From assembly GCF_001194135.2 (NCBI RefSeq), contig NC_068994.1:38325134-38389133 (forward strand): a stretch of DNA of 64,000 bases, in the 5' to 3' direction. A program made the translations under genes and the position numbers. This DNA comes from Octopus bimaculoides (lineage: Eukaryota). The notes beneath the pieces were generated by a model. That model ran no database searches and was not told the DNA's origin. It saw only the letters and a list, made by a program, of their open reading frames with translations. Positions 18,113-57,385 of the stretch are shown one piece after another (within the stretch, counting starts at the first letter, position 1; each line of letters starts with the position of its first letter).

Positions 18113-18171
18113 TCTAATAAATTAATGTCTATATATCAATTTCTCCATTTTCTTTTTCTCATACAAAAATG

Positions 18172-18207
<36 letters not shown>

Positions 18208-18208
<1 letters not shown>

Positions 18209-28753: not shown

Positions 28754-31234
28754 CTGTTGATGATGTCTTAATGTTGGGTTATCCCATCTTTCACCTGGCA
28801 TGGTTCTGTAGTGAATATCTTCTCTATCTACCATTGGTTGTTGAGATTTCTTCAGGTTTTTCTCTATTGTGTACTGAACTCCAGGAGGAACACAAGTAGG
28901 ATCAAATGTGTATTTTGATTGGATGTTTAATGTAGGCGTAACTTTATGGTACATATCAACACTATTATAGTTGCTATCTGTCTGCTTCAGTCTATGAACT
29001 ATACAGATTGTTATAGAGATCACTATAACAATTGATACTATCACAGCTNNNNNNNNNNNNNNNNNNNNNNNNNNNNNNNNNNNNNNNNNNNNNNNNNNNN
29101 NNNNNNNNNNNNNNNNNNNNNNNNNNNNNNNNNNNNNNNNNNNNNNNNNNNNNNNNNNNNNNNNNNNNNNNNNNNNNNNNNNNNNNNNNNNNNNNNNNNN
29201 NNNNNNNNNNNNNNNNNNNNNNNNNNNNNNNNNNNNNNNNNNNNNNNNNNNNNNNNNNNNNNNNNNNNNNNNNNNNNNNNNNNNNNNNNNNNNNNNNNNN
29301 NNNNNNNNNNNNNNNNNNNNNNNNNNNNNNNNNNNNNNNNNNNNNNNNNNNNNNNNNNNNNNNNNNNNNNNNNNNNNNNNNNNNNNNNTTTGAAATAAGT
29401 GTTTCTCATTACCTCTGAGTATTTCATATGTGAGGAAGGCATTGTGTTGACTGTCTCTGTCAGAGGCCCTAACAACTATGATATCATGGTCAGAGTGGGG
29501 ATGGTAGTGGACATTAAGACTGAAAGGGTTAACATTAGGGAAACTGAAATAGGGAGCATTATCATTTAAATCCATAACCTCAACAACAACATTTGCTGTG
29601 TTCTCCAGTGATGGTGTTCCTTTATCTTTTACTAAAACCTTAAACTCATACATGTTCTTTTCTTCTCTGTCTAGTGACTCAGTTGTGGAAATAAATCCCA
29701 CATCAGATATCTGAAATGGTAGAATATCTTTTCCATTCGTCAACAGAGAATAGGTTAATTGTCCTCCATCTCCAATATCTGGGTCTGTAGCATTGACTTG
29801 TCCAACCGGGAAGGCTTTGTGTTCATTTTCATAGGTGAGAAACTTAAATATGTCCTGACTAAACTGAGGTTGTACATCATTTATGTCAGTGACCTCTATA
29901 GAAAACTGTCTCTCTACTTTTAATGGAGGTAAACCATTATCTTGACATTTAATGGTGAAATTAAATCTCTTCTCACTCTCTCTATCTATTTCACTCTTTA
30001 CAACAATTCTGTATTTCTTTTCAGACATTGAGATTAACTGAAGGTATTTATTTTGTAAATGACATTTCACTTGTCCATTTACGCCATTGTCATTGTCAGT
30101 AACTTTAACATATGAGACAAAGCTGTGACGTTTTGCTGCTTCTGAAATTACAGCTGTGTTTCCAGTTGACTCTATAACAAATTTGACTTTGATTTTGGGA
30201 GGATTGTTAAGGTGACTGATTCCAGTTACAAGAACAGTAGCAGCTGAAGACCTAGGAGTGTTATCATTATCTCTGGCTTCAACAATTATTTTGTAGGATT
30301 TTCCAAACTGAAATTCTTTTGTAATAAAGACGTCTCCAGTTACTTCATCTAATTTAAAACATTGTTTAAAATTACTTGGTGTTTTAGCATTAAACACATA
30401 AGAAATTCTTCCATTTTCCCCTGCATCTAAGTCGGTAGCAAACAACCTTACAATAGGTTTGTTTATTTCCTGTGTATCGTTTATAGTGACATTGTAGATA
30501 TTCTCTGAGAATATAGGAGAGTTATCATTTTCATCCACCACCAATATTTTTAAATTCAATGATCCTTCCTTTGGTGGAGATCCACCATCTGTGGCAATTA
30601 ACTGAAGATAATAAATATCCTTTGTCTCTCGGTCCAAGTTTTCTTCTAAAATCAGTTGCAGAAAATCATTGCCATCTGTTTTATTAGAAACCAACAATTT
30701 GAAAGGAATATTTTCTTCTTTGAGTCGATAAAATAGTTTAGAATTTTGAATACTGATATCATTATCAATTGCATTTGGAATTATCTTTCTTCCTAAGGAT
30801 ACATTTTCGTCAAATTGCATATTAACATCCTTGCGAATAAACATCGGATAATTATCATTGACATCTTCTATTATAACTTTGATTTCTAATATCCTGATAA
30901 CAGAATGGCCATGTTGAATAGCTATTTCTAATATCCTGAAACATTCCACATTATAATGACATAGAGTTTCTGCATCCAATATGGCAGCTGTATATATTTG
31001 TCCTCCGGGTGTAACATTAAACAACTGAACACTTCCATCTGTATTACCCTGGAGTATTTTAAATTTCAGTATGTCGCTGTTATCTTGAGACTGCATATTA
31101 TCCAGTAAATGTGTATCACTGACAATATCTCCAATATAACTGTGTATATCATTGTTCTCTTTCACATGGTAGATATGATCTACACACTGGCAGCTGCCAG
31201 CCATCAACAACATCAACAATACCACGGACAACAT
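28754..31234 (-). CDS. PCDH: Protocadherin P2, large coding exon (gap in EC6)
   Basis: ORF 28745-31297 with six-EC architecture and TM; acceptor ttttcag| at 31339; likely ATG 31234 (an in-frame ATG also at 31297); donor CAG|gtaag at 28754. Confidence 0.93.
29049..29388. other. Assembly gap; others at about 9924-10096, 27801-27810, 39160-39169, 44424-44544, 46032-46262, 53699-54126, 55335-55715, 62124-62718
   Basis: N runs; four of nine fall in EC5-EC6 coding sequence of P2-P5. Confidence 0.98.
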
Positions 31235-31435
31235 GGTTATAGTCTTCAATTCTAGTTTCAACAGGAATATATATGGACAATGATGTAAAGAAAACATCTA
31301 TCAATTATTTCTTGCTTGGTGAAATTGCTTTGCTTTATCCTGAAAAACATATATATTTTATATCGGTAAGCGAGAGGAAATTATGAAAACTTACATCAGT
31401 GGTATAAAATATATCAGTTATACAATCATTTAGGC

Positions 31436-31684
31436 CAGGGGTTTTCAAACTTTTTGACTTGCGGACCCCTTTATATTTCAGGCTTTACCTTAAGGACCCC
31501 CTTATAAACGCTTATGAAATTGATACATAAATATTTGCTTAAAATAACATTTTTACATTTATTTATTTAACAGTATTTAACAAATAGGTTTATTGTCAAT
31601 TAAAAGATTTCAATTAAAAAACATATATAAAATCAAATTGCCCATAAAAAGTATTTGCTGCGGACCACAGTTTGAAAACCCCTG
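31436..31684. mobile_element. hAT-type MITE (249 bp) in P2 leader intron
   Basis: TIRs caggggttttcaaact / agtttgaaaacccctg; exact 8-bp TSD atttaggc at 31428-31435 and 31685-31692. Confidence 0.85.
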
Positions 31685-32556
31685 ATTTAGGCCAATATGT
31701 CTGTCTTTTCCCCTGTCTCCTACTCTTTGAAGCTATCTTCATAACCTTTGATTTCACCTTGTTATTTGATAAAAGTGTTACAAGCAGACATTTTCCTCAA
31801 GGACAACAAAGTTCAATTCTGGGGCAAAAAAATATGACAGTGCTCATCAGATTTTGCCATAATTTCTTTTGTGTTTCATCATCCCTGAAATCATGAGCAT
31901 CAGTATTTATAAAACACTACCTGGTTTAACACCCTTATCTGGCATGTCATTACTTTAAAAGGGGTTCCATCTACTAATGATACTAATTCTTCTAAACCAT
32001 CTTATTCCTTGAAGAAATCAGTTTTAGATGTCCAGGTTGGGCGCTAGTTTCATTAATATCATTAATCTGAGTGTGACAAAGGCCTATGAGAGGCAGGTTC
32101 AAGCAGCACATTCATCTGAATCCCAGAGACCCAAGGGGGAAAAAAAAAAAAAACAGTGACCATCTATTTGGAGCCCCACCCTAATAACCTTTGGTTGAAC
32201 AATTCGATTCTGATACTTTTTTTATTTAAAGCTCAGGAGTTATTTTATCCAACTCTTATGCCAAGCAGCAAAGTTACAGGGATGTAAACAAACTGTAGTG
32301 AGAAACAAATACACACATATGCATTATATATATATGTGTGTGTGTGTATATATAATCCAAGAGAGTTAGTGGTTGACGATTCAACCCACTAAGGGATAGT
32401 ATCTATCCAATATACTGCTGGGAAGGTACCCAATTATTGTTATACCAAATGCAATAAGTGGGTGCGGGTAAAAAGGGGTTATTTTACCCTAAATTTATAT
32501 AGCAATGAGAAAATGGAGGAGAATATACTGCATATTCTCTTCCATTTTCTCATTGC

Positions 32557-32590
<34 letters not shown>

Positions 32591-33395
32591 CGCACACACA
32601 TGCACATACATGGCGATTTTCTTTCAGTCTTTGTCAACCAAATCCACTCACAAGGCTTTGGTCACCCCAGTGCTATAGTAGAAGACACTTGCCTATAGTG
32701 CCACATAGTGGTACTAAACCAGGAACCATGTGGTTAGGAAGCAAACCTCTTACCCGTTGAACATTTTTGAATTTTGAAAAGACACAATCACCACCCATCC
32801 CGAGGTCATGAAGTGGTTTTGTTTGCTGCAACAGGCCAAGTTTCTCTTAGTAGCTTTGAGGAGGAACGGCAAAGGATATGATCATTATTCCAACTATCCC
32901 AGCAAGTAGCATAAAACAAAACAAAAAGAAAACATTACTTCACGTAATCTGAGTTATTGCCCTTGGATACTGACCTACAAGAAATAATACTATCAAAAAA
33001 AAAAAAAGTATGAAAATATTTTCTTCTCACATTCTAATTACTAATTAATAAATTATACCTAACGTTAATTTCTAATTAAACATTAATTATTCTATTCATA
33101 GATCAACTTTCCATAATTCTGAAATTGTTTGTAACAGTGAAAAATAATTTATTGAAATTATATCAGTTTCTACACTTGAAAAGCTTTGATGAATATTATC
33201 TTCATTCCAGATTAGATTTCTGGAAATCATGATGAGACAGTAATATCTGTGAAAAATTGAAGCAATAGTATGTAAATTGTATCACATCCTCTATCTAACA
33301 GAATGGAGAACTTGTGAATAAATAAACCCTATTTTTTTTAAATATATAAATATTTACACATCAAATTATCAAAATAACTTTTAGTAAGTACTTAC

Positions 33396-33628
33396 CAACA
33401 GTCATTTGTTGTTTATATAGTTGTTACTGTACTGTTTCAGTGTTATGATAACAAAGTTGTAGTAGTAGCAGAAGTTTAGCATGTGTTAGTGTTATACAGT
33501 TCTATCAAGTTGGTTGTGTAGTATGTAATGTGTGTTGTAGCCAATGACAAGCTGTCTATTATTCCTATGCAAGGAAACGGAAGTACAGCCTCCAGTTTTT
33601 TTGCAGTTAATGATGGGCTGACTCACAT
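33396..33628 (-). promoter_or_regulatory. P2 leader exon and conserved promoter core
   Basis: Donor ctgttg|gtaagt at 33396; core ccaatgacaagctgtc...gcaaggaaacggaagtacagcctccag...gggctgactcac at about 33537-33628. Confidence 0.7.
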
Positions 33629-34482
33629 ACAATATCACTTAGGCCCACATACACGTGTGTGTGTGTGTGTGTGTTAGTAGAGTGTACATAAATGAACAAG
33701 GAAGAAATATCTAAAATGGAAAGGGTAGGCAATAAATTCAGTATGGAAAATGTTATTTCTAAGTAATGATTATATAGTTTATAAACAATATAAAAAAATT
33801 CATATTAGCAAGTTTACTTATGATACTAAATTGGCATAATCTGCAAAAAAAAAAAAAAAAAATCTATAAAATGAATGTAAAATTATTCACTATGAACTGT
33901 TTACATTAATAATAATATGCCAGGTTATCTAAAGAAACTTTTTAGAAAATACGAAACTGTGGCTGTCAATAAACAAATGTCTCTTGAGTAAAGATTTGTA
34001 TGATTGAAAACTGACTTAGTAAAATAAACTCAAAGAGTAATATTTAGGAATCATCTAAATACAAAGCTGTCATTTTAAATCAAAAGTGTACATTTAATTT
34101 TGAATGCAGTGACAGTTTCAAAATAATCATTAATATTTAAAAATTTTAGCAAGAAATAAGTACATAGAAACAACTAAGAAAGTAAACTGCAAAAAACTAT
34201 TTCTTTGCCAGGAAACTATAACATGGATCTTTAATTTTAGTATTTTCATTGATATCTTAAAATCTGGTAAAATGTTTGGGAGAAACCTGTTTTGACTAAA
34301 TGTTAGATGAAATATCAATAAGTTTCTAAAAATTACTATTTATGATGCACAATGAATACAAGTTCCATTGTGGAAGGAAATACTCCCATAATATAAATAT
34401 TTTCCACTAATTTATCCCATTCAGTGAATTCATTGCCTGTATTGTGTAAATGGTAGCTTGGAATATTCTTGAAATTGTATAA

Positions 34483-34802
34483 TTAGTTGTTTCTTGAAGG
34501 TAAAGGTGGAATTACCTCAGGTATTGAAAGTATGTTTGGTAGTGTTGTTACTTTAGGTACAGTTCGAAGAGATGATTTACAATCTGAAGTAAACTGACTA
34601 GTTACTGGTATTTCATATAGTGGTTCAGTTTGGTTAGATGTAGTACCAATTATAGTCAAAGGTATTTGCTCAGGAAAACTGGAAGTGTTAATACCAATGT
34701 CTGGTTGATAAGGATAGCCATTGTTATTACCTCCACTTGATTTCTTACGAGTGTATGGCAGTAGATTTCTCTGTGTATGATCACTTTGATAACCGTATTT
34801 GT
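34483..34802 (-). CDS. P3 last coding exon (DKYGYQSDHTQRNL...VPKVTTLPN...LPSRNN*)
   Basis: Acceptor ttttcag|acaaa at 34802; ORF 34483-34842; homologous to the last exons of paralogs. Confidence 0.8.
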
Positions 34803-37800
34803 CTGAAAATGCATAGATATATGAAAAGGTACTTTGAAACAAACAAACTTTGTTTTTTTATGAATAAAACTATCCAATACTTATGTATTATTTATGTGTA
34901 CTTGTGTATTTCTCACCAGTATATTGACAAAGTAACTGTTGAAGTAGTATTGAATTGCATCCATATTTACGTCATACTTAGATTTTATTTTTCCGTTATG
35001 GTTAAGTTTGAGGAAAAATTTTGGTCGGACAATTTGCATGTAGTGGACTCTAATGTGATCAAAGAAACTTCCAAATAACCTACATACTCTTATGAAAAGA
35101 ATCACCTCATCCTTCCCTTTGTGCACAACATCTTGTACATTGAGGGTTTGCTCTGGTTACCCATCACTACTTTTTTATCTCCTCCTCAACTACTTCCACC
35201 CACCCCTATATACAATGTGGGGTGGGTTGGAGTAGAGGAGAAAGAGATAAAAAGATGTAATGTGGCATACCAGAGCAAACCTCCAAGGTACAAGAAGTTG
35301 TACACAATATGAGGCAGCCATGTATCTCCTCTACAGCAAGGTACCTGTGCTTATCACTATCATACGTTAGCCTTTCAACATCTAGTGTAAAGCCACTTTT
35401 CCCTCTCAAAAACTAGCCCACCCTCACTTAAAAGTTCAGCTTTTTTTTGTATTCCATTTTTCCTTGTTCTTTTTCTGTTCTGCAAGATATTTGGCACCCT
35501 CACTAGTACCAGTTGCATGAGAAAAAGCAACCAGAATGCACTGTATTGTGGTTGGTATTAGCAATGGCATATAGCCTTAGAAATCAACCCAAAGTATACT
35601 CTATAACTCAGCACAGCCTCACAGCTTACTGGATCTTGTCAATTTATCCAATTCATGCCATCACTGATGACAGACATGAAATGATGATGATAATGTTCAT
35701 GGCATAGTTTTAGAAAAGCACAATAAGTATTAATTTCTATGATCACATCAAATGTCCACTTTTCCATGCTTGCATAGTTCAAACAGAATTTGTTAATGCA
35801 GGTATTCTATAATTGGATGCCCTTCCTTTTGCTAACCTTCACTTGTTTCTAAGCAATGTGATATTTTCCCACGACTGGACAAGTTTTCATGGAAAATTGG
35901 AAATGTATGACAACACGTGTATAACAGTGACTCGTTAACATCTACTATGAGATGTCTGGACAAGGAGACACAAACAGACACACACACAAATATACATAAA
36001 TACATGCATGCGTGTGCATGCAGGCAGACATATATGCATGATGAACTTCTTTCAGTTTCCATCAACTATAATCCACTCACAAAGCTTTGGTCAGCTAAAA
36101 CATTTAGTCAAAGACACTTGCTCAATGAGACTAAGTGGCATTCTGGTTGGGAAGTAAGCCTGTTAACCACACAGCCATGCTTATGCCTTGTGCTTACAAT
36201 GGTTATATTAGTCCACAATGATGAGAAGTAAATGAGTGAAAACCTCGGATGCCTCTTATAACTGAATATCACAGTTTACCAACATCATCCAACTAACAAA
36301 CTCTGAAAAGGTGTTTGACAGTGAATTTTATGCTAGTTGGAACCTCAAATAATCCCAACCAACATAAGCATGCAAAATACATGCAACAGTATTAGCTTAA
36401 TGATATCACAAGCTAGATAAATACAAAACATTTAGTGGACAGGTGTTGCACAGATACATAAATAGAATAGTAATGGAATAATATTATATAAATTACTCCG
36501 GTTATGAATTATAAATCTTATATTTCTGACTTCTGAATTCCCTTTCAACTCTCAGCTCATATATTCTGGTTTTGAAGGACCCTTTAAGCTTTTGTGTGGA
36601 TTACTAGGGTTTAATAGTATTGGAGACTGAATTGCAGCAATAATAACTGAAGATGATGATTTATTTGAAATATTACTACAAGGTAATGATCACATGGTCA
36701 ATCAATCATCTACAAAATGGAACAGCTAGTGATAGTGACCTATTGATAACATTATCAGGATTAGCAGATGAGTTTGGTGAAAGATGTTTAGCAGTTATTC
36801 ACTTGATGTTTACAGATAGTTTCCATGTTTAGATTTAATGCAGTTTCTGGACGTATGAATCAGCGACCAAATATTTGTGAGAAATCTCATTACATTGTTT
36901 TTGAAAATTAACTATTTGGTTAAACATTTGAAGAAAGTTTACAGCTATTTTTGCCAAATAATTTTTCCACAGAAAATCATGTATCAGAGCATTATAGCAT
37001 TTGAAAATAACCCTAAGCAAATATTAATCAAACTTTCCATTTGATTGACTGTAGCCTTTTAAAACTGATTTTTTAAAAAATGATGGTTTGCATAGTTTTC
37101 TGCTGCACTATTGAATTTTGAAATGAAGGAAGGAATTTCAACTTCCTTGTAGACAAGACAGTGTAACAAGTTAAATCTGGCTCATAGTCTGATACCATTG
37201 TCACTGGAATATCACACCAACAGACAGTGGAAAATGAACATTTCCTCAGGTTCCTACTGTAATGTAATGTTACATAAACAGACTTCAAAGTAGTGCCGAG
37301 TCAAATGTATTCAACAAATATCCAGTATTTTGTGTGCATACTCAATCCATATGTAACTTATCCTGGAGCTGTGACTGAGTCAATAAAAGGGCTACCATTA
37401 AAGCTGATTCTAGTGCACACACTCCACAAGATCTGATAAATTCTTTAACATTTCTACCAAGATTAGTTTACCAAGCACAAGCCCTTCTTACTTCAGTGTT
37501 TATTGCACAACTATGTGTGTCATGAACTGAAGAAAGAAGTATTGCATGGTAACATTCAGAAATAAATAGAATGGCTTTACGTGGAATAAAATTATTCTCT
37601 ACAAAGTATTCAGATGAATGACTTAAACATTGTCATTGTAAGACATAATTTCAACCAAACTTTTCCAGCAGTGTGATTTTTAAGCAAACATAAAGAGTAA
37701 TCTTTAAATCTTTAAAATGATTTTTGATGTCTTAGTCTGAACTTTAGCATAAATGAATTCAATGTCACTTTCTGACAATGAAAAGCATTTGTAAAATATC

Positions 37801-37810
37801 TCAAACTTAC

Positions 37811-37958
37811 CAGGCATTTCCTCAAATTGTCCAACACTACTGACGCTCCAGCCATGGCCATTATCATTGCAAGCTGATAATGGTGACATATCACTGAATT
37901 GGTGGGTGCTGTTTAGTCCACTGTAACTTGGAGACATATTTTCTCTTGGAACAAACAT
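37811..37958 (-). CDS. P3 coding exon 2 (MFVPRENMSPSYSG...DNGHGWSVSSVGQFEEMP), 148 bp
   Basis: Acceptor tttcag|ATG; donor cctg|gtaagt, phase 1; part of ORF 37704-37976. Confidence 0.85.
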
Positions 37959-38374
37959 CTGAAAACACAAATCCATAATTAGGATATAGTAAAAAGGGTT
38001 GAAATATATGCGATATGTTATATATAACTAAAATAATTAATAATGGTTTTTGAATTATGTACACAGCTAGCAATTTTGTTGGGTCGGGGTGAAACTTGTT
38101 CATAATAACTATTTTTTATTTAACCAACCTCAGAGAGATAAAAGGCAAAGTTGGTCTTGCCAGGAGAAATACAACAAAGCATTTTCTCTAACTAGCCTCT
38201 GACACTAAACCCACCAACCTGATGAACACATAATTATAATCGATTAAAAATATTAATACAAAATGCACATTGTAGATAGAGCAGTTGAATTCTCATAGTA
38301 ACATGCAATCAAATGAAAACATGAGAAAAATCTTTATCTACATTTCAGAGAAAAAGATACTGAAAGCACCTCAC

Positions 38375-40739
38375 CAGTTGATGTCTTCTTAAAGTCAGAT
38401 CATCCCATCTACCACCTGATATAGCTGAGTAGAGAAAAATTTTTCTGTACACCATTTCTTCTTCAGATTTCTTCAGATCTTTCTCCATTGTGTTCTGAAC
38501 TTCAGGAGCAACACAAGTAGGATTGGACGTATATCTTGATTGCATATTTAATGTTAATGTAGGTGAAACGTTGTGGAACATAGCTCTACTATTATAGTTG
38601 CTATCTGTCTGCTTCAGTCTATGAACTATACAGATTGATATAGAGATCACAATAACAACTGATACTATCACAGCTGCTATAACAATAACAATCATCACAT
38701 TCAATTGGAGACCATTACTTGATTCTGTTGTTGTCTTTGAAGGGGTCTTAAACATCTTTGTGTTGTTACTAACTGTTAGAGTCAAAGACAATGTTGTTGT
38801 TGATGAGAAAACTGGATTCCCACTGTCTTTCACACCTAATTCCAGTTCATAGAATCCAGCATCATTTTGGTAAAGTGAGCGAGCGAAAGATAAGACACCA
38901 GAGTGATGGTTCATTTGAAATAAGTGTTTCTCATTACCTCTGAGTATTTCATATGTGAGGAAGGCATTGTGTTGACTGTCTCTGTCAGAGGCCCTAACAA
39001 CTGTGATATCATGGTCAGAGTGGGGATGGTAGTGGACATTAAGACTGAAAGGGTTAACATTAGGGAAACTGAAATAGGGAGCATTATCATTTAAATCCAT
39101 AACCTCAACAACAACATTTGCTGTGTTCTCCAGTGATGGTGTTCCTTTATCTTTTACTANNNNNNNNNNGTGACTCAGTTGTGGAAATAAATCCCACATC
39201 AGATATCTGAAATGGTAGAATATATTTACCATTAGATAACAAAGAATAGGTTAATTGTCCTCCATCTCCAATATCTGGGTCTGTAGCATTGACATATCCA
39301 ACAGGGAAGTCTTTGTGTTCATTTTCATAGGTGAGAAACTTAAATATGTCCTGAGTAAACTGAGGTTGTACGTCATTTATATCAGTAACCAGCATAGAAG
39401 ATTCTTTCTCCACTGTCAATGGAGGTAAACCATTATCTTGACATTTAATGGTGAAATTAAAGCTCTTCTCACTCTCTCTATCTATTTCACTCTTGACAAC
39501 AACTTTGTATTTCTTTTCAGAAATTGAGATTAGCTGAAGGTATTTATTTTGTAAATGACACTTCACTTGTCCATTTTCTCCACTGTCATTGTCAATAACT
39601 TCGACAAAAGCAACAAAGCTGTGAATTTGAATTGCTTCTGAAATGAGAACTGTGTTTCCAGTTGACTTGAAGAGAAATTTGACATCAATGTTTGGTGGAT
39701 TATTACGATGTGTGACACCATTTACCTGAACAATGGCTGTTGAGGACATAGGTGTATTACCACTATCTCTAGCTTCAACAAGCAATTTATAGAATTTTCC
39801 AAACTTGAATTCTTTCGTTATGTGCATTTCTCCTGTTATTCCATCTAAAGTAAAGCATTGCTTAACTTTATTTTGTGTTTTAGCACTAAAAGCATAAGAA
39901 ATTCTTCCATTTTCCCCTTCATCTATATCTGTTGCAGACAGTCTTACAATAGGCTTGTTCATTTGATGTGTGTCATTTACAGTTATATTATAAATATTCT
40001 GGATGAATACAGGGAAATTATCATTTTTATCTTCCACTAATATCTTTATATCTAGTACGCCTTCCTTTGGTGGTGTTCCTTCATCTTTGGCAATTAACTG
40101 AATTCTATAGATGTCTTTTATCTCACGATCTAAGTTACTTTCTAAATTTAGTTGTAATAAATTACTTCCATCTGTTTTATTAGAAACAAACAATTTGAAA
40201 GAAATACCTTCATACTCTACGAGTTGATAAGAGATTTTAGAATTCTGAATACTAACATCATTGTCAATTGCATTTGGAATTATTTCTTTTGTTCCAGCCA
40301 ATGCATTTTCGTCAAATTGTATTTGAAATTCATTAATTGGAAACAATGGATAATTGTCATTGACATCTTCTATCATAACTTTGATTTCTAATATCCTGAT
40401 GACAGAATGGCCATGTTGAATAGCTATTTCTAATATCCTGAAACATTCCACATTATAATGACATAGAGTTTCTGCATCCAATATGGCAGCTGTATATAGT
40501 TGTCCTCCCTGTGTAACATTAAATAACTGAACACTTCTATCAGTACCACCCTGGTGTATTTTAAATGTCAGTTTGTTGTTGTCATCCTTCGTCTGTATAT
40601 TATCCATTAAGTGTGTATCGGTGACAATATCTCCAATATAGCTGTGTGTATCATTATTCTCTTTCACATAGTACATATGATCCACACACCAGTAGCTGTT
40701 AGCCATCAGCACCACAATCAACAAAATCATTGACAGCAT
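38375..40739 (-). CDS. PCDH: Protocadherin P3, large coding exon (10-N placeholder gap in EC5)
   Basis: ORFs 39147-40805 and 38345-39232 join across the gap; paralogs show about 40 nt missing there. Acceptor ttacag| at 40841; ATG 40739; donor CTG|gtgag at 38375. Confidence 0.92.
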
Positions 40740-41902
40740 GACTACAGTCTTCAATAATGTTACCAAAAGGGATAGTAAGTGGATAACGATAATGAAATAT
40801 ATCAAACAAATGTTGCACCCTCAGTTTTCTTCTGTCACCTCCTGTAAGCATGTAAATTTATATTTCATTAAGCAAGAGAAAATTATAATATTTGCAGCAA
40901 TGATATAAATAGATTAATAATTCCATAAACATACTGATTTATATCAAAATCTCTGCATTATCTTTCATCTGTCTGTCTCAATGCATTTTCATCAATATTA
41001 TGTACTCTTTCACATATAACAATATTGTGTAATACTAGAAATATTAAGTAAATGCGTTTTATCATGAGTTAAATCTTTTTGCATTAGATTCTTCTACTCT
41101 TCAACAATTTTTGAACCATAATAATCTACAGGTCTGATATTATTAAACAGATGAGGAAAAAAATTTACATATGCAGGACTCATTTATTTCAAGTTGCCAC
41201 CCATGAAAGTGGAAACTATACTCAAATTAATTCAACACATGTGATATATACTTGAAGTTTTGAGCTGTAAATGAAAACTGTACAGTGCATGTGAATTTAC
41301 TAAATGGAGATCATATTGTTAAGTAGATCATCTTGAGTGAAATTCAAGACAGTCACAACTTTTAAATAATATACTTATAAATGCCTTGCTGTTGACTGCA
41401 AAGCTTTTGTAGTTTGAATAATTATGAATTTGGCTTTTTAACAATCTGCTGAAAATGTACTGTAGAAATCTTTAAATTATGTAGCCACAAAATTACCAAA
41501 TTAAAAATGAAAACACAGTTATTTAAACTACATGGTTTGAATTACTGCCCTTCGATACCACCCAAGTGAAAAGAAAAAATATTTGTGATAAACTTCTAAG
41601 TCTTTGTAATTATCATATATTCATTCTAGTCACTTACAATTAACACTTTGATTGCAGTTAAAATTATTTTCTAATCAAAGATTAACCCTCTCACACAGAT
41701 TCAAACTTTCATTAATTCTAGAATTCTCTGGAACACTAAAATGATAGATTCTAAAATTTAGTGCAATTATACCTTCTCTATTATTTACTATTCTTGATAG
41801 TACAATTTACATTCCATGTACGACTTCTGGAAATCATTATGAAATACAAATATTAGAAAATAACTATTTTTAAATCTCACGAGAGATATTCAGCAATAAT
41901 AC

Positions 41903-42250
41903 TTTGGAGTAAAGGTTGTTTACCAACATAACATGGCGGTCCTGGTTTAGGACAAATGTTGCTGTAATTTAGCCCCAGGAGACATTGTCTCCAGCTGGCT
42001 ATACGACACAATCTGTGTCCTTACATTTTTCGAACAAGGGAATCTAGCACCCCCACTCAGCTCAAAACAATATCTGTGTATCGTGATTTTCGGGTTATTT
42101 TCCTTCACCAGCACAGCTGAAGCAAAATGTAAGGACACAGATCATGTTGTTTAGCTAGCTGGAGACAATTTCTCCTGGGGTTAAATTACGGCAACATTCA
42201 TCCTAAACCAGGACAGCTGTGTTATGTTGGCAAACAGCCTTTACTCCAAA
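41903..42250. mobile_element. Foldback/MITE with long imperfect TIRs (about 125 bp) in P3 leader intron
   Basis: tttggagtaaagg..ggacaaatgttgc..ccccaggagacattgtctccagct..tgtgtccttacatttt, mirrored at about 42124-42250. Confidence 0.75.
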
Positions 42251-42402
42251 TGCAAATATGTTTGAAAAATTCTAATGATAGTAAGTAAACTATTGTATTA
42301 CATCATTCCCTATGTAACAACAGATTTAACTTGTGAATAAATAAACCATTTTAGAAATATACAAACGTTTACACATCAGAATAACTTTCAATAAATACTT
42401 AC

Positions 42403-42648
42403 CATGAGTTGTTTGTTGTTTGTACTGGTGTTACTGCACTATTTGTGTGTTCTGGTTACAAAGTTGTAGTAGCAGCAGCAGCAGTCCTGAATAGGTTGGT
42501 ATGTGATAGTACTATATAGTCCTATGAAGTTGGTTGTTAGTACGTCATGTTTGTTGTAACCAATGACAAGCTGTCTATTTTTCCCATGCAAGGAAATGGA
42601 AATACAGCCTCTAGTTCTTGCAGTTAATAATGGTCTGACTCACAGACT
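42403..42648 (-). promoter_or_regulatory. P3 leader exon and conserved promoter core
   Basis: Donor ctcatg|gtaagt at 42403; core ccaatgacaagctgtc...gcaaggaaatggaaatacagcct...ggtctgactcacagact at about 42556-42648. Confidence 0.68.
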
Positions 42649-43655: not shown

Positions 43656-43981
43656 TTAGATGTTTGTTTCAGATTGAGAAGGTACCTGAAGTATTGAAGG
43701 TACCTTTGGTAGAGTTGTTACTTTAGGTACAGCTGGTAGAGGTGGTTTACAGTCTGAAGAAAAGTCACTTGTCATTGGTACAGTAGATGGTTGTTCACTT
43801 ACGTCAGATGTAGTACCAGTTACTGTAAAAGGTATTTGGTCATGATCACAGGAAGTGTTAATATCAACGTTAGGCTGGTAATGATATCCATTGTGATTAT
43901 CTCCGCTTGATCTGTTGAATGTGTTTGAAAAATTGGGATTTCTCCTATTCCATGTACGGTCATATTGATAGCGGCACAGAT
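43656..43981 (-). CDS. P4 last coding exon (DLCRYQYDRTWNRRNP...KPPLPAVPKVTTLPKVP...SETNI*)
   Basis: Acceptor tctag|atctg at 43981; ORF 43656-44018. Confidence 0.85.
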
Positions 43982-44339
43982 CTAGAAATATCCAGATGTG
44001 GATGAAGTTAAAACGCAAAAAGAAAAAACAATAACCCTTACATTTGTTTTATACAAAAAAATAATTAAACATTTATGTAGTACTTGTACTGCTAATCAAA
44101 GCATTGATATAATAACATACCATGAAGAAAGAATTACACTCCTGCAAATACCATATTAAGATTTTTTCCTGGTTATAGTCAGATTCAGGAAAAAATTTTG
44201 GGAGTAAGATCAATTTGCAATAGACTGATGGAACTTTTCAGATAAAAGCCTTGATGACAAAGGACAGAGATATTAAAACATTGCTGAAATCAAGAAGACC
44301 ACCACAACACAATTGATATCCTAAAACAAGACTACCACA

Positions 44340-44830
44340 TAAAAAGCATTTGTGCTGGTCCCACGTAAAAAGCACTGGTGCTGGGGGCCACGTAAAAAGC
44401 ACTTGGTACCACGTAAAAAGCACNNNNNNNNNNNNNNNNNNNNNNNNNNNNNNNNNNNNNNNNNNNNNNNNNNNNNNNNNNNNNNNNNNNNNNNNNNNNN
44501 NNNNNNNNNNNNNNNNNNNNNNNNNNNNNNNNNNNNNNNNNNNNNGCTGGTGCCCTGTAAAAAGCACTGGTGCTGGGGCCACGTAAAAAGCATTGGTGCT
44601 GAGGCCACTTAAAAAGCACTGGTGCTGGGGCCACGTAAAAAGCACTGGTGCTGGGGCCACGTAAAAAGCACTGGTGATGGGGACACGTAAAAAGCACTGG
44701 TGATGGGGACACGTAAAAAGCACTAGTGCTGGGACCACGTAAAAAGCACTGGTGATGGGGCCACTTAAAAAAAAATTGGTGCCAGTACCATGTAAATATC
44801 CCCAGTACTAGTGCCATGTAAATAGCACCT
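44340..44830 (+). repeat. Minisatellite, about 26-bp unit ggtgctggggccacgtaaaaagcact, interrupted by an N gap
   Basis: Consecutive near-identical units without unique spacers; grades into RTE 3' UTR sequence at 44880-45035. Confidence 0.9.
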
Positions 44831-45207
44831 GTGCTGGTGCCACAAAAAAAAGTACCTGTGCAAGTGTCATGTAAAAGTACCAATGCTACTACCATATAAA
44901 AAGTACCCAGCACACACTTTAAAGTGGATAGCATTAGAAAGGGCAGCCAGCCATAGAAACCAAACCGAAACACATGACTGGCCACTGGTGCAGTTCTCCA
45001 GCTCTAGCCAAACCATCCAACCCATGCCAGCATGGAAAACGTATGTATGTATAATCTGAAGCATGCTACAATGAAAAAAAGTGAACATAAAACAGACTGA
45101 AAGATATATACAAAGTTTTACATTATCATAAACACCTCGTTACATTTCAATACTCAATTCAAATACTTCTTGCTTTTGAAGAAATTTTGGAGATTTTTTT
45201 TACTGAC

Positions 45208-45358
45208 CTGGCAGTTCCTCATAATGTCCAGCACTACCGACACTCCAACCATGACCACTATCAGAGTGAGATGACAATGTTGACATTTCACTGAATTGGT
45301 CAGTATAGTTTAGTTCTCTATATCCTGGAGAGATGCTTTCTTCTCTTGGAATAAACAT
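45208..45358 (-). CDS. P4 coding exon 2 (MFIPREESISPGYRELNYTDQFSEMSTLSSHSDSGHGWSVGSAGHYEELP), 151 bp
   Basis: Acceptor ttccag|ATG; donor ccag|gtcagt, phase 1; hand-translated. Confidence 0.85.
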
Positions 45359-45568
45359 CTGGAAAAATTTATTACATAGTGCAGTATACAGTTACAATAA
45401 TAAGAAAGATTCTAATAATCTATGGTGTTTCATGTTTTGTAATAGAATATTTTAAGATATGAAATTATGAAGAACATTCTGAAATACTTATTTCTTCAAG
45501 ATAAACTATACACAAAAGCAGAATTTTCCCCAAAAGATTTCCAAACACATGAAAATTAATGAACTCAC

Positions 45569-47792
45569 CTGTTGTTTTCTTGAAGTTAGATCATCCCATC
45601 TATCAGCTGACATAGTTCTGCAGTGAATATCTTTCCTGTCTTCTATTGGTTGTTGAGATTTCTTCAGATTTCTCTCCAATGTGTTCTGAACTTTAGGATG
45701 AACACATGTGGGATCAAAAATATATTTTGATTGTATATTTAATGTAGGTGTAACCTTGTGGTACATATCAACACTACTATTATAGTTGCTATCTGTTCGC
45801 TTCAAACCATGAACTATACAGATTGATATAGAGATCACTATAACAACTGATAGGATCACAGCTGCTATAACAATAACAGTCATCACATTCAATTGGAGAC
45901 CATTACTTGATTCTGTTGTTGTCTTTGAAGGGGTCTTAAATATCTTTGATGTGTTGTTACTAACTGTTAGAGTCAAAGACAACATTGTTGTTGATGACAG
46001 AACTGGATTACCACTATCTTTCACACTTAGTNNNNNNNNNNNNNNNNNNNNNNNNNNNNNNNNNNNNNNNNNNNNNNNNNNNNNNNNNNNNNNNNNNNNN
46101 NNNNNNNNNNNNNNNNNNNNNNNNNNNNNNNNNNNNNNNNNNNNNNNNNNNNNNNNNNNNNNNNNNNNNNNNNNNNNNNNNNNNNNNNNNNNNNNNNNNN
46201 NNNNNNNNNNNNNNNNNNNNNNNNNNNNNNNNNNNNNNNNNNNNNNNNNNNNNNNNNNNNNNTATCTGAAATGGTAGAATATCTTTTCCATTAGATAATA
46301 GAGAATAGGTTAATTGTCCTCCATCTCCAATATCTGGGTCTGTAGCATTGACATATCCAACAGGGAAGTCTTTGTGTTCATTTTCATAGGTGAGAAACTT
46401 AAATGTGTCCTGACTAAACTGAGGCTGTACATCATTTATGTCAGTGACCATCATAGAAAACTGTTTCTCTACTTTCAATGGAGGTAAACCATTATCTTGA
46501 CATTTAATTGTGAAATCAAATCTCTTCTCACTCTCTCTATCTATTTCACTCTTGACAACAATTTTGTATTTCTTTACAGACAATGAGATTAGCTGAAGAT
46601 ATCTGTTTTGTAAATGACACTTCACTTGTCCATTTACTCCACCGTCATTGTCAGTAACTTTGACATATGCAATAAAGTTGTGAATTTGAGTTCCTTCTGA
46701 AATGACTGCTGTGTTTCCAGTCAACTTTAAAATGAATTTGACATCAATGTCTGGTGGATTATTAAGAAGACTGACACCGTTTACAAGAACAGTGGCTGTT
46801 GAGGACCTTGGTGGATTACCATTATCTCTAGCTTCAACAAACAATTTATATATCCTTCCGAACTGAAATTCTTTCTTCAGAAACAAATATCCAGTTACTT
46901 CATCTAATCTGAAAAATTGTACAGCATATTTTGATATGATGGCATTGAAAAAATAAGATATTAATCCATTTTCTCCTTCATCTAAATCTGTAGCTGACAG
47001 CTTTGCAATAGGTTTGTTTAACTGGTGTGTGTCATTTACAGTGACATTAATAGTATTTTGGGAGAACACAGGGAAATTATCATTAATATCTTTAATAATT
47101 ATTTTTATGTGAAGTACACCTTCCTTTACAGGTGATCCTTTATCTCTGGCAATTAACTGAATATTATACATGTCTTTTGTCTCACGATCTAAGACATTTT
47201 CTAGATTTAGTTGCAATAAATCAGAGCCATCCAAATTTTTAGAAACAAACAATTTAAAAGGAATATCTAAATCTTTGATCTGATAAGTGATTCTGGAATT
47301 CTTAATACTGACATCATTATCAATGGCATTTGGAATTATATATTTGGTTCCTATTAAATCATTTTCATCAAATTTTAAATGAAATTCCTTCTTTGGAAAC
47401 TTAGGATAATTATCATTGACATCATCTATTACAACTTTGATTTCTATTATCTTGAGAAAGGAATGGTCATGTTGAACTGCTATTTCCAATATTCTGAAAC
47501 ATTCCACATTATATTGGCATAGAATCTCTGCATCCAATATAGCAGCAGTGTACAGTTGTCCTCCAGGTGTAACATTAAATAACTGAACAGCTCCATCAAT
47601 ACTACCTTGTAGTACATTAAATGTCAGTTTGTTACTTTTATCCTGAGACTGTATATTATGCAGTAACTGTGTATCAGTGACAATATCTCCAATGTAGCTG
47701 TGTATATCCTTGTTCTCCTTCACATGGTAGATGTGATCCACACACCAGCAGTTGTCAGCCATCAACAATACCAACAAAACTATATATAACAT
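45569..47792 (-). CDS. PCDH: Protocadherin P4, large coding exon (gap over EC5-EC6)
   Basis: ORFs 46014-47807 and 45506-46291 flank the gap; acceptor ttttcag| at 47880; ATG 47792; donor CAG|gtgag at 45569. Confidence 0.92.
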
Positions 47793-50044
47793 GGCTACAG
47801 TCTCCAAGGTAATATATATATGTAATGTTGATGGAAACTATCAAAGAATTGTGACTTCTTGAATTTTCTTCTGTTGTCTCCTGAAAACATGTAAAGACGT
47901 ATAAACTTATTATGCATAAGAAAGGATGTAGTAATCAAGAAAATGCATATAATTTCCAACTGAAAGTAATGAGATATTGTATGATAGAATTACAAATTAT
48001 GCCAAGTTGTCAAGGTGACAGAATCATTAGCACACCAGACAAAATAATTAGCAGCATTTTGTCCATCTTTACATTCCAAATTCAAATTCTTCCATAGTCA
48101 ACTTTGCCTTTCATCCTTTCAGGATTGATAAAATGCCCATTGAACAGTACAGCTGATGTAATTGATTTACACCTTCCTCTATAATTGTTGACCTTGTGCC
48201 TAAATTTGAAATCAAATTACAAGTCATGCCAAAGACTCTACATATCATTGCATTCTCTCTCTCAATATGCATTTCCATCAACATATAGTGTGAACTCTTT
48301 CAACCAGTAGTTTAATACAATAGAATTTTATGATATTTCCCTTCCACACAAATAAGTTGTTTTTGGTGTGTAAAACTATTACATAAATGGTCTTGTCTCT
48401 TATTCTGTAACAACTATTTCTTAAAATTTCATCATTTCAGGAACAACTTCATCACTAAAACAAATGAAGGTAAGATATTTATATATGTTTGACTGGCTTA
48501 CATCTGTTAAATTATCTTAGATTCTTATTAAGTAAGCTTTAAAAAAAGTCTACACTGACACTTAAAGAACCCTTTTCAAATATCTGTCAAAACTCCCTCC
48601 AGCTACAAACTGCCATAATATTTAAAAAGAAGACACATTGGAAAATATGTATATCAAAGTACAGTATAACACACAAAAAATAAAAATGTAATCATCATGG
48701 CCAAAACTGCCTTTCATCATTGATTTGTTCAATCAGAAACAACTTGGGATTAAAAGGCAGTTGTGACTCAAAGTATAATTAGCCTTTCCACTGAAATGAT
48801 ATTTCTAGAAATTCTCTGCAATTAATCTGATGGTACATGTATCTTTTCAAAATACTCTCATAAATATTTTATGATTAGCATTAAGTTTTGCAGTCTGAAG
48901 AACAACCAGCTGAGGTTTTTAGCAATCTGCTATAGAGAGAAGACCATAATCGTTGCTCTAACAGGCTAAAAGCTCAATATGCAACAGGGGTTGTATACTA
49001 GTGCCATACTTTACGAGTTTCACAACACTATTTATGCCAGGATAGCACAAAAGTATCTTCTACTAAAATATCTGTTACTAAACGTACTTATTCTATGCCA
49101 CAAGGCTATGAGTCAAGTCACAACAATGAAGCTGCAACCTTTACAGTTAGACATTATTGATAATTTTTTAGATGTGATTCATAAACTTTTACTGAGATGA
49201 AAATTGAATAAATATTTTAACATTTTCTTCCATTACTAAAATGGACTCAACTCATTTAGACTTGCTTTTCTGATTCATGTTAAACCAACACACTGGATGG
49301 TTGAGATCAAGGATGTGATTTGGTTAAACACACCACATGAATCTTTTTATCATACACTTGTTTCAGTTATTAGACAGTGGCCATGCTGGGGCACTAGCCT
49401 GATAATATATTCTCTATTTACAACCTTAGTACTCCCCAATCGTTTTATTCCAAAAGTTATTAAATTACAGAACATTTAGAATGAGTCTCTGTTTCATAGA
49501 TATTATTAGTTTTTAAGACTCATACTTACTGAGTTACATTTGGAAAAAAAATTTGAAAAATAAACACAACAAAATGAGTTATTCCCCTTTAATATTGACC
49601 TAAAAAAAAAAAGAGAGAACAAGCAATAATTGCCAAAATAGCCTGAGCTGAAGAGATAATTTCCTTCATTACATCTACCTTCTAATTACAGATATTTAAC
49701 CATTCTGTTATATTTAACACCATTCTCTCATTAACATTAGCCATTCCAATCATAGTAAAACCTCCAGTAATTCCAGAATTTACAGCAAGAGTAAAATTAC
49801 AAATTTTAAAACTTAGTGAAATTATAGCTTTCCTAAAATTTACTATTCAAGATAGTCTTTGAGAAATACCATTTATATTCCAGATCTGATATATGGAAAT
49901 CGTGATGAGGTACAAATATCTGAATAGAATAACATTCTATTATTACATCCTGTATGTACCAATAGAATGAACTTGTGAATAAATAAAACAGTTTAAAAAC
50001 ATACAAACGTTTACACAACAGAATAATTTCTAATAAGTACTTAC

Positions 50045-51339: not shown

Positions 51340-51665
51340 CTAAATGTTTGTTGCAGATAGAGGAGGAGGAGGTACCTGGGATGATGAAGGTACCTTTGGT
51401 AGTGTTGTTATTTTGGGTACAGCTGGCAGAGATGGTTTACAGTCTGAAGTAAACTGACTTTTCACTGGTACTGTAGAATGTTGTTCAGTTATGTTAGATG
51501 TAGTCCCAGTAATAGTCAAAGGTGTTTGGTCAATCGAACAGGAAGTGTTATCAACATTGGGTCGATAGTGATATCCATATTCGTTATCTCCCCTTGATCT
51601 GTTGAGTGTATTTTGAAGTTGATTTCTTCTATTCCATGTATGGTCACTTTGATAACGACACAGAT
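51340..51665 (-). CDS. P5 last coding exon (DLCRYQSDHTWNRRNQL...LPAVPKITTLPKVP...SATNI*)
   Basis: Acceptor ttttag|atctg at 51665; ORF 51340-51810. Confidence 0.85.
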
Positions 51666-52049
51666 CTAAAAGTATCAAGATTTTACATAAATATACTTTG
51701 GAATCAACGATTAGCCTCATTAACATTTCTTTCATGCATAAAATTATTCTACATCTGTGTAGATTTGTTTGAAAGTTCGCCTCAATTTCTCTGTAAACCA
51801 GTGTTATCAATAAATTATCAAGCTGTTGATTAAAAATTCAAAGATAGAAGTAGTTGTTTTAGCCTAATTTAGGGGTACTGATTTCAGATTCAAAACCAGC
51901 TTTCACTCATCACCTTTAGTTTTTTAGATATACATTATTATGATTTTGCGACAATTCACATAACTATATATATATGACCAATTTTTATTTTGCTTTCCAG
52001 ATTTTTGTGATACATATCTCTGCAAAGGCTTCAGACACTTCAGAACACT

Positions 52050-52800: not shown

Positions 52801-53131
52801 TTTCTAATAGAACTTTTTATATAATCAATATCTTATATATTCTATGTTAGAAATGAACAATAACTGTTAATTACATTGTAGTCCCATACTTTTGGTGGAA
52901 TGAAAGCTCCCTTCCTTGAAAAGCAATAAAGGATTAGCAACAGAAAGAGTTTCTGAGTGTATGCATTGCCTTAATATTCTACTCATCTGACTCATGCTAG
53001 GATAACAAAAATGAACATAAGATGAATGAACAAACTAAATTAAATATATGTAATTCTCTTTCATTAGTAAATATAATATTTAATTTACAAGTTTCTTACA
53101 TCAGAAGAAATGTTTGGTATTTTTAACTTAC

Positions 53132-53279
53132 CTGGCAGTTCCTCATAGTGTCCAGCACTACCGACACTCCAGCCATGACCACTATCAGTGTGAGATAATG
53201 TTGACATCTCACTGAGTTGATCGGTATTGTTTAGCTCTCTGTAACCTGGAGACATACTTTCCTCTCTTGGAATAAAGAT
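53132..53279 (-). CDS. P5 coding exon 2 (IFIPREESMSPGYRELNNTDQLSEMSTLSHTDSGHGWSVGSAGHYEELP), 148 bp
   Basis: Acceptor ttttag|atc; donor ccag|gtaagt, phase 1; one-codon deletion keeps frame; hand-translated. Confidence 0.85.
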
Positions 53280-54245: not shown

Positions 54246-54837
54246 ATTTAGCCAAGTAAACTGAGCACAGGAACAATAATGAACAGAGTATGTAATTCAA
54301 TATGAAAACTGCATCTGAGTTCTGTAAGAACTATCAAATTGTATTTGATAGTTCACCAATATTATACAACCAAAATACAAAAAATTATTTACAGATAAAA
54401 ATAGCAAACATGTTTTATTTACATCTATTGTTTACTGCACTTGTGTTTATATAATAATACTAGTAGAGATTAACAATTATTTCAAATAGTGTAAATATAA
54501 TATTTCTCCAACCATAAAGATTGTGAAAGTCAATAAATATTTGTTGCTTCTCAATTTCATTTGCAGCACTCATATGGCGCTTTGCTACAAAAAATGAACT
54601 GAAAAGAGTCAGAAAATAGATGCAGAGAAGATACAGGTACAATAGGGGGAACAATTTAAATGTAAAATAGTGTGATTTGTATATAAAGAAAACAATTTTT
54701 AAATATTTTCTTAAGATGATTTCTCTGAAATATATATATACAAAGCAGTTATACTTCATGCAGGAACATATAAATAGATAAAACATGCAAGAACAACTCT
54801 TTTTCTTTGATTTTCCAAATAAATATAAGCAACTCAC

Positions 54838-57385
54838 CTGTTGAGGTCTTTTAAAGGTCAGATCATTCCATCTATCAGCTGACATATTCCTGCAGTGAAT
54901 ATCTTCTCTGTCTACCTTTGGTAGTTGAGATTTCTTCACATTTCTCTCCATTGTGTAGTGAATTCCAGGAGGAACACAAGTAGGATCAAATATATATTTT
55001 GATTGGATGTTTAATGTAGGTGTAACCTTGTGGTACATATCAACACTACTATCATAGTTGCTATCTGTCTGCTTCAGTCTATGAACTATACAGATTGATA
55101 TAGAGATCACTATAACAACTGATACTATCACAGCTGCTATAACAATAACAATCATCACATTCAATTGGAGACCATTACTTGATTCTGTTGTTGTCTTTGA
55201 AGGGGTCTTAAATATCTTTGATGTGTTGTTACTAACTGTTAGAGTCAAAGACAAAGTTGTTGTTGATGACAGAACTGGACGGCCACTGTCTTTCACACCT
55301 AATTCCAGTTCATAGAATCCGGCATCGTTTTGGTNNNNNNNNNNNNNNNNNNNNNNNNNNNNNNNNNNNNNNNNNNNNNNNNNNNNNNNNNNNNNNNNNN
55401 NNNNNNNNNNNNNNNNNNNNNNNNNNNNNNNNNNNNNNNNNNNNNNNNNNNNNNNNNNNNNNNNNNNNNNNNNNNNNNNNNNNNNNNNNNNNNNNNNNNN
55501 NNNNNNNNNNNNNNNNNNNNNNNNNNNNNNNNNNNNNNNNNNNNNNNNNNNNNNNNNNNNNNNNNNNNNNNNNNNNNNNNNNNNNNNNNNNNNNNNNNNN
55601 NNNNNNNNNNNNNNNNNNNNNNNNNNNNNNNNNNNNNNNNNNNNNNNNNNNNNNNNNNNNNNNNNNNNNNNNNNNNNNNNNNNNNNNNNNNNNNNNNNNN
55701 NNNNNNNNNNNNNNNAAATCCATAACCTCAACAACAACATTTGCTGTGTTCTCCAGTGATGGTGTTCCTTTATCTTTTACTAAAACCTTAAACTCAAACA
55801 TGTTCTTTTCTTCCCTGTCTAGTGACTTAGTTGTGGAAATAAATCCCACATCAGATATCTGAAATGGTAGAATATCTTTTCCATTAGATAATAGAGAATA
55901 GGTTAATTGTCCTCCATCTCCAATATCTGGGTCTGTAGCATCAACATATCCCACAGGGAAGTCTTTGTGTTCATTTTCATAGGTGAGGAACTTATATATG
56001 TCTTGACTAAACTGAGGTTGTACATCGTTTATGTCAGTAACCAACATTGAAAATTGTCTCTCTACTTTCAATGGAGGTAAACCATTATCTTGACATTTAA
56101 TGGTGAAATTAAATCTCTTCTCACTCTCTCTATCTATTTCACTCTTGACAACAACTTTGTATTTCTTTTCAGACTCTGAGATTAGCTGAAGATATCTATT
56201 TTGTAAACGACACTTCACTTGTCCATTTTCTCCATTGTCATTGTCAATAATTTCGACAAAAGCAACAAAGCTGTGAATTTGAATTGCCTCTGAAATGAGA
56301 ACTGTGTTTTCAGTTGACTTTAAGAGAAATTTGACATCAATGTTTGGTGGATTATTACGATGTGTGACACCATTTACCTGAACAATGGCTGTTGAGGACA
56401 TAGGTGTATTACCACTATCTCTGGCTTCAACAGTTATTCTATACATTTTTCCAAATTGAAATTCATTCGTTATAAACATTTCTCCTGTTGTCTTATATAA
56501 TTTAAAACACTGTTTGATTTTATTTGGGGTTTTAGCACTAAAAATGTATGAAATTTTTCCATTTACCCCTTCATCTAAATCAGTAGCCAACAACCTCAGA
56601 ACAGGTTTGTGTATCTGATGTGTGTCATTTATTGTCACATTGTAGATATTTTGGGAAAATACAGGGGAATTATCATTTTTATCCTCCACTAATATTTTTA
56701 TATCCAGTATACCTTCTTTTGGTGGAGATCCCCCATCTGTGGCAATCAATTGAAGATTATAAATGCTTTTAGTCTCACGATCTAAGTTACTTTCTAGAAT
56801 TATCTGTAATACACTAGATTCATCTGATCTCTTCAAAATGAACAATTTGAACGGAATATGTAAATCTCTTAGCTGATATTTGATTTTTGAGTTCTGAATA
56901 CTGACATCATTATCAATGGCATTTGGAAGTATTTCTCTTGTTCCTGTCAATACGTTTTCATAGAGTTGCAGGTGAAATTCATTAACTGGAAAGAAGGGAT
57001 AATTGTCATTGATGTCTTCTATTATAACTTTGATTTTTAATATCTTGATAAAAGAATGACTATGTTGAACTGCTATTTCCAATATCCTAAAACATTCCAC
57101 ATTATATTGGCACAGAATTTCTGCATCCAGTACGGCTGTTGTAATTAGGTGTCCTTCAGGTGTAACATTGAATAACTGAATACTTCCATCAGTACCACCC
57201 CGGATAACATTAAATGTAACTTTGTTGCTATCATCCTGAGTCTGTATATCATCCAGTAAGTGTGTATCAGTGACAATATTTCCAATAAAACTGTGTATGT
57301 CAATGTTCTCTTTCACATGGTAGATATGATCCACACACCAGCAACTGTCAGCTGTCAACAGTACCAACAAAACTATGAATAACAT
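54838..57385 (-). CDS. PCDH: Protocadherin P5, large coding exon (gap in EC6)
   Basis: ORFs 55310-57400 and 54460-55740 flank the gap; tandem acceptors at about 57484 and 57492; ATG 57385; donor CAG|gtgag at 54838. Confidence 0.92.

Follow-up and report, generated by a model that had tools for sequence, protein, structure and literature searches.

How does one gene of a tandem array come to share a short piece of its ectodomain almost letter for letter with one neighbour, and a second piece with a different neighbour, while the sequence around both pieces is clearly more divergent? The question is raised by a 64-kb stretch of an Octopus bimaculoides short-read scaffold (the window, to whose positions all coordinates refer unless another locus is named; A+T 64%, nine N-gaps), the minus strand of which carries six tandem protocadherin genes, P1-P6, about 9 kb apart. 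The gene in question is P3. Its exon 1, which runs from ATG to the stop of the open reading frame (ORF) at 38345-40739 and appears as 38345-40805 in the list of tandem genes, encodes a signal peptide, six extracellular cadherin repeats (EC1-EC6), a transmembrane (TM) segment and the proximal part of the cytoplasmic tail; the actual splice donor is slightly upstream of 38345. A first-pass annotation of this DNA had described two such pieces, one shared with P2 and one with P5, and read them as segmental conversion between paralogues. Here we report that the two tracts, together with further patches in the array, are best explained by interlocus (ectopic) gene conversion between old paralogues, which has made P3 a mosaic with pieces shared with P2, P5 and P1, exchanged after the split from Octopus vulgaris. 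We put the probability of this reading at roughly 87%.

Two tracts that P3 shares with P2 and P5

All alignments were anchored on exon 1 of P1 (19401-21836), the sole gap-free copy in the window, with an ORF of 811 aa, which also served as coordinate reference. For comparison we used four gap-free loci from the same array in two other species: L001 and L002 on O. vulgaris OX597827.1, with copies Va-Vg, and L003 and L004 on O. sinensis CM016872.1, with copies Sa-Sh. In O. vulgaris, Ve, Vf and Vg follow each other in the order of P3, P2 and P1, and in EC2 P3 pairs with Ve (92% nt), P2 with Vf (91%) and P4 with Sf, Sg and Sh. Synonymous divergence, expressed as Nei-Gojobori proportions (pS), is 0.13-0.22 between orthologues and 0.4-0.9 between paralogues, and the paralogues therefore predate the species split.

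Tract 1 takes in the last third of EC1, as far as the DVNDNYP linker between EC1 and EC2. The single mismatch in 117 bp described before (P3 40382-40498, P2 30880-30996) was reproduced by direct base comparison, and the shared piece extends further: P3 40375-40498 and P2 30873-30996 differ at 1 of 124 bp around an identical core of 97 bp, and at 3 of 152 bp at maximal extent (40357-40508 and 30855-31006, respectively). The surroundings are indeed more divergent, flank and background identity in EC1-EC3 being 60-87%. In a GENECONV-type permutation of polymorphic sites (5000 permutations) the P2-P3 pair showed 33 consecutive concordant polymorphic sites in this tract (global p<=0.0002), most other pairs having maxima of 7-10. 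The P3-P2 pS is 0.07 within the tract versus 0.28 and 0.47 in its flanks, and the tract tree joins P2 and P3 with 98% bootstrap support, against 100% for both (P3,Ve) and (P2,Vf) in the EC2 tree.

The comparison with O. vulgaris gives tract 1 a direction. P2 resembles Vf, its O. vulgaris orthologue, within the tract and on both sides of it. Of the tract sites that distinguish Ve from Vf, P3 agrees with Vf at 14 and with Ve at 4, as against 9 and 47 in the adjacent EC2, and the raw alignment returns to near-identity between P3 and Ve directly 3' of the DVNDNYP linker; the 3' flank of P3 is thus clearly Ve-like, and the 5' flank weakly favours Ve (19:14). Since P3 is Vf-type in the tract and Ve-like right after the linker, we infer that P2 donated the tract and P3 received it, with a change of about 12-15 residues in P3 EC1.

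Tract 2 begins ~27 residues before the end of EC3, crosses the degenerate EC3-EC4 linker and continues ~44 residues into EC4 (P3 39557-39770, P5 56209-56422). Here too base-by-base comparison recovered the count given earlier, 3 mismatches in 170 bp between P3 39601-39770 and P5 56253-56422; the whole tract has 5 mismatches in 214 bp and an identical core of 101 bp. It contains 44 consecutive concordant polymorphic sites for P3-P5 (global p<=0.0002), with a pS of 0.04-0.05 versus about 0.51 upstream. In the tract tree P3 and P5 group at 100% and P3, P5 and Ve at 97%; the tree of the EC3 body has (P5,Ve) at 100%. The 3' edge merges into a zone in which all paralogues are 90-98% alike. At the 5' boundary P5 remains collinear with Ve and P3 breaks, the 5' flank of P3 being unlike any sampled copy. 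The orthologue of P3 by synteny, Ve (L001 9605-12064), is a mosaic too, with a P3-like EC2 and tail and a P5-like EC3 body.

Both tracts thus combine an excess run of identity, a pS drop limited to one pair and a conflict between tract and flank trees. The segmental conversion proposed in the first-pass annotation is borne out by permutation, synonymous divergence and phylogeny alike, and the per-domain trees that it had named as a check are incongruent, at 98-100% bootstrap, rather than congruent. Divergence within the tracts is lower than that between orthologues (3/151 versus 17/150 for tract 1, p=0.001; 5/187 versus 20/187 for tract 2, p=0.003), and we therefore place the exchanges after the split from O. 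vulgaris. All are dated relative to the species split, and one of them has a named donor and recipient.

A third patch in P3 (39099-39345, end of EC4 and EC5) straddles the 10-N gap of this gene (39160-39169) and shows no difference from P1 20134-20409 on either side of it. Its two parts match P1 without mismatch over 176 bp and 61 bp, and the next 66 bp contain 11 mismatches, which makes for a sharp upstream edge. As a separate observation, P3 39420-39440 (P1-nt 1367-1376) carries a private cluster of three substitutions that reads EKESS, where all other copies of the three species read EKQFS.

Tract 1 and tract 2 both terminate in sequence blocks that are conserved across all paralogues (LYTAAILDAE, DVNDNYP, VEARDxG and DNDSGENG), a position that would fit a heteroduplex anchored on local identity. 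The patches may have arisen when break repair misaligned onto a neighbouring paralogue as template and was resolved without crossover, the repair being seeded in the conserved cadherin motifs at the tract ends. On our reading, some 124-152 bp at the EC1 end of P3 were overwritten with P2 sequence, ~214 bp across the EC3/EC4 junction are common to P3 and P5, and at least 237 bp of P3 EC4/EC5 are identical to P1. Over the array as a whole the result is graded: EC5-EC6-TM is homogenised in all copies, EC1, EC4 and the tail are patched occasionally, and EC2 and most of EC3 have been left paralogue-specific.

Patches of this kind are not restricted to P3. At the EC4/EC5 junction of P4, 172 bp (46302-46473) are identical to P1 20307-20478, a tract with 26 concordant polymorphic sites (global p=0.001). 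P1 19165-19710 and P2 ~28510-29048, which cover the cytoplasmic tail and most of intron 1, are identical in a gapped alignment over at least 545 bp save for three short indels, the tract being cut off by the gap in P2. The tails of P1 and P2 are each 91-92% identical to Vf, the orthologue of P2; P2 is therefore the likely donor, and the tract is probably a recent P2-to-P1 conversion.

Constraint, mis-assembly and the history of tract 2

Purifying selection, or convergence at the protein level, could also keep short tracts alike with no exchange of DNA, and the part of EC1 that contains tract 1 is indeed its least diverged, with 82-91% identity among all copies. The identity, however, covers synonymous sites and concerns one pair in each tract: the drop in pS is confined to that pair and to the tract itself, other pairs having values of 0.2-0.45 in the same columns, which excludes constraint as its cause. 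The identity of P1 and P2 moreover continues through an intron, and the segment trees are incongruent. Selective constraint was rejected on the grounds of the synonymous sites and the intron, and we assign it a negligible probability. Somewhat more weight is due to an artefact in which reads of P2 or P5 were written into P3 during contig construction, gap closure or polishing. The 64 kb contain nine N-gaps, four of them inside homogenised gene parts, the tract lengths of 100-200 bp are near read length, and protein searches retrieved no independent P3 sequence; no match from these searches exceeded 83% identity to P3 and none was a short fragment, and the searches were uninformative (17 candidates for a 169-aa query, length-matched matches only for a 372-aa query). 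Yet the copies of the tracts differ from each other (1-3 and 3-5 mismatches), at some positions by differences private to P3, and P3-specific, Ve-like sequence directly adjoins tract 1, on either side of which each gene appears to retain the signature of its own orthologue (weakly so in the 5' flank of P3), which speaks against a swap of the flanks. A single gap-free stretch (39170-44423) contains both P3 tracts, as had been pointed out before, and the partner copies lie in gap-free stretches of their own (29389-39159 for tract 1 in P2, 55716-62123 for tract 2 in P5). Stretches of several hundred bp that are identical among paralogues were left open as gaps by the assembler and not bridged: the four intragenic gaps all fall in EC5-EC6, where the paralogues are nearly identical. 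Like tracts also occur in the gap-free assemblies, one between Va and Vg of O. vulgaris at the same EC1 spot (global p=0.004) and a further significant one between Sb and Sd of O. sinensis. We consider a mis-assembly of P3 unlikely.

A different question is whether tract 2 is the trace of one short conversion or the remnant of something larger. An exchange or chimeric duplication of at least 550 bp, comprising most of EC3 and the start of EC4, may have taken place between the P3 and P5 lineages, with the EC3 body of P3 later replaced by an unsampled paralogue, or with Ve converted. Ve groups with P3 in the EC2 tree (100%), with P5 in that of the EC3 body and with the two together in that of tract 2, which points in this direction, as do the collinearity of P5 and Ve across the 5' boundary, broken in P3, and the EC3-body pS, which is at paralogue level for P3-Ve (0.57) and at orthologue level for P5-Ve (0.22). 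Against this, the scenario needs two events instead of one, and no donor for the EC3 body of P3 was found among 20 genomic copies of three species (five from O. bimaculoides, seven from O. vulgaris and eight from O. sinensis) and 120 database proteins, the best match being Ve with 77% nt and 74% aa identity; the P5 orthologue of O. vulgaris and O. sinensis, which would set the polarity, lies upstream of Vd and Sf, beyond the four loci compared. We regard the larger exchange as a tentative account that falls somewhat short of even odds. It is possible that P5 patched P3 and that Ve was separately converted in O. vulgaris; it is also possible that a larger segment of the P3 lineage passed to P5 and that the EC3 body of P3 was replaced later.

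Several observations weigh against ectopic conversion after the species split as we prefer to read it. The sequence comes from a short-read scaffold with nine gaps, and the P3 haplotype rests on one assembly. The synonymous differences inside the tracts are few (1-2). With Ve resembling P3 in EC2 and the tail but P5 in the EC3 body, tract 2 may have run in either direction and may once have been longer, and the EC3 body of P3 has no close relative in the sample (identity at most 77%, pS to Ve 0.57). The third patch, shared with P1, adjoins a gap, and its pairwise p of 0.001 becomes 0.12 globally.

Domain gradient and recognition

The exchanges in P3 are set in an array whose divergence is graded by domain. 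Mean paralogue pS in the window is 0.30 in EC1, 0.56 in EC2, 0.45 in EC3, 0.21 in EC4, 0.10 in EC5, 0.07 in EC6, 0.05 in TM and 0.27 in the tail, and the same gradient is found in the gap-free assemblies of O. vulgaris and O. sinensis. Across EC5-EC6-TM all paralogues share 96-100% identity (e.g. P1 19650-20420 and P3 38600-39345; likewise in L001-L004). Six differences between O. bimaculoides and O. vulgaris/O. sinensis are fixed in all copies, and all are confined to EC5-TM; trans-species polymorphisms, of which there are 69 in EC1, 296 in EC2-EC3, 41 in EC4 and 66 in the tail, are nearly absent from that part. The membrane-proximal half is in concerted evolution, and the recognition domains are private to each gene. 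The between-species pS in EC5-EC6-TM, 0.04-0.08, is below that of orthologous EC2/EC3 (0.13-0.22).

That gene conversion shapes vertebrate protocadherin clusters, as stated in the first-pass annotation, is established (Noonan et al. 2004, as summarised in PMC4978886); conversion there is graded by domain, with synonymous divergence lowest in EC5/EC6 and highest in EC2/EC3. The octopus array resembles these clusters in its tandem large ectodomain exons and in its pS values for EC2, EC3, EC5 and EC6. It differs in that its genes are independent three-exon units with C-terminal exons of their own (PMC9068888), in that the expansion arose independently, and in that discrete short patches in EC1 and across EC3/EC4 are resolved with an outgroup. 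Whether a cephalopod expansion independent of that of vertebrates follows the same evolutionary rules is a comparative question, and the mirrored gradient supports a shared logic reached by convergence, in which a common cis or membrane-proximal module is combined with private recognition modules.

Conversion in octopus protocadherins has already been suggested. General, tree-based remarks on similarity and conversion in the same family and species have been published (Albertin 2015 as cited in PMC6339937; PMC9068888); in the papers available we found no tract-level, per-domain or donor/recipient analysis. What is new here is the resolution of individual tracts, the donor, the timing and the domain gradient. 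That conversion occurs at all will be no surprise to specialists, who have seen it proposed for this family before.

Do the patches alter recognition? P3 EC1-EC4 aligns over all four repeats with the vertebrate structures PDB 6VG4 (PCDH10), 5SZN (gamma-A9) and 5K8R (gamma-B3), with E values from 1e-45 to 6e-79. The octopus proteins have six EC repeats and a TM segment like the delta-2 and clustered protocadherins, which form antiparallel trans dimers through EC1-EC4; a literature search for cephalopod protocadherins returned no reported binding data. The first-pass annotation had taken EC1-EC4 as a whole to set trans-binding specificity in vertebrates. This holds for EC2 and EC3, whereas EC1 and EC4 contribute a non-selective affinity, and chimeras exchanged in EC1/EC4 still aggregate (PMC5001838).

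The surviving patches lie mostly in EC1 and EC4, and EC2 and most of EC3 retain clean orthology. By analogy with the vertebrate proteins, patches in EC1 and EC4 need not change the recognition code, and the idea that conversion persists where it leaves specificity undisturbed would fit at least as well as the creation of new codes. The exchange of most of EC3 among P3, P5 and Ve is the one case that, to judge from the domains involved, could alter specificity. A broader proposal would be that octopus arrays, beyond tolerating conversion away from the specificity core, use the exchange of sub-domain cassettes (the EC1 end, the EC3/EC4 junction and occasionally a near-whole EC3) as a recurrent way of building new homophilic specificities out of parts already present; we find this doubtful. 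If true, it would be convergent with vertebrate clusters and would reach further into the recognition domains. P3, P5 and Ve are natural chimeras that could help to show which EC domains set specificity in octopus.

Gene structure and other features of the window

The assignment of the array to the protocadherins rests on tandem cadherin repeats with Ca-binding linkers, followed by a single TM segment. Pfam recognises Cadherin in five stretches (E=6e-67) and an N-terminal Cadherin_2; the linker motifs at aa 136, 248, 354, 464 and 569 of P1 and the TM segment at aa 703 delimit six EC repeats, followed by TM and a short tail. The repeat units of the array are homologous beyond the exons, introns and spacers being 70-80% identical.

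Shared constant exons of the vertebrate type were not found in P2-P6, where each exon 1 is followed within a few kb by a diverged exon 2 and exon 3 that belong to that gene, in agreement with the report that cephalopod protocadherins have no such shared exons (PMC9068888). All of the following are on the minus strand. Exon 1 of P2 (28745-31297, gap 29049-29388) is followed by exon 2 at 28302-28451 and exon 3 at 26439-26765; the corresponding positions are 45506-47807 (gap 46032-46262), 45209-45358 and 43659-43982 for P4, and 54460-57400 (gap 55335-55715), 53121-53279 and 51343-51672 for P5. The 3' part of P6 exon 1 (63103-64000) extends past the window end, and exons 2 and 3 of this gene lie at 61727-61873 and 60827-61135. 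The P4 ORF reads identical to the O. bimaculoides entry UniRef A0A0L8FTE7, a gene model spliced across the P4 gap, the C-terminal exons of which match the window at 100%. In P1 exon 2 alone was detected (18964-19104): the 19 kb that follow (window 1-18960) contained neither a detectable exon 3, which all other copies have within ~3.5 kb, nor a further protocadherin exon 1. P1 may be the last gene of a sub-array, truncated at its C terminus.

The sequences bordering each of the four intragenic gaps are collinear, in one frame, with the intact exon of P1 and match it at 27-30 of 30 flanking bases, and the 10-N gap of P3 hides 39 nt, or 13 codons. The apparent frame changes at the gaps of P3, P4 and P5 arise because the written gap length and the missing length differ modulo 3. 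Pseudogenes, which such frameshifts might suggest, were rejected, the written gap lengths being estimates.

Outside the genes, a degenerate tandem repeat, which yields repetitive ORFs (FYVAPAPVLFTWPQHQCFLRGPSTSA...), occurs in the spacers at 44238-44985 (around the gap 44424-44545), 9757-10359 and 14511-15002. A self-match of 44546-44829 with 44624-44907 suggests a repeat period of ~78 bp, and two assembly gaps fall inside such spacer repeats. A Pfam scan of the ORFs 16913-17410 and 14511-15002 gave no match; the former, of 165 aa on the minus strand, resembles by eye the N-terminal part of a retroelement reverse transcriptase. In O. sinensis two copies look degenerate, Sa (L003 987-3390), which matches P1 in four pieces only at 55-79% identity, and Sg (L004 9965-12420), which is split by a frameshift; Sg stands with Sf and Sh as one of three P4-like copies in a row.

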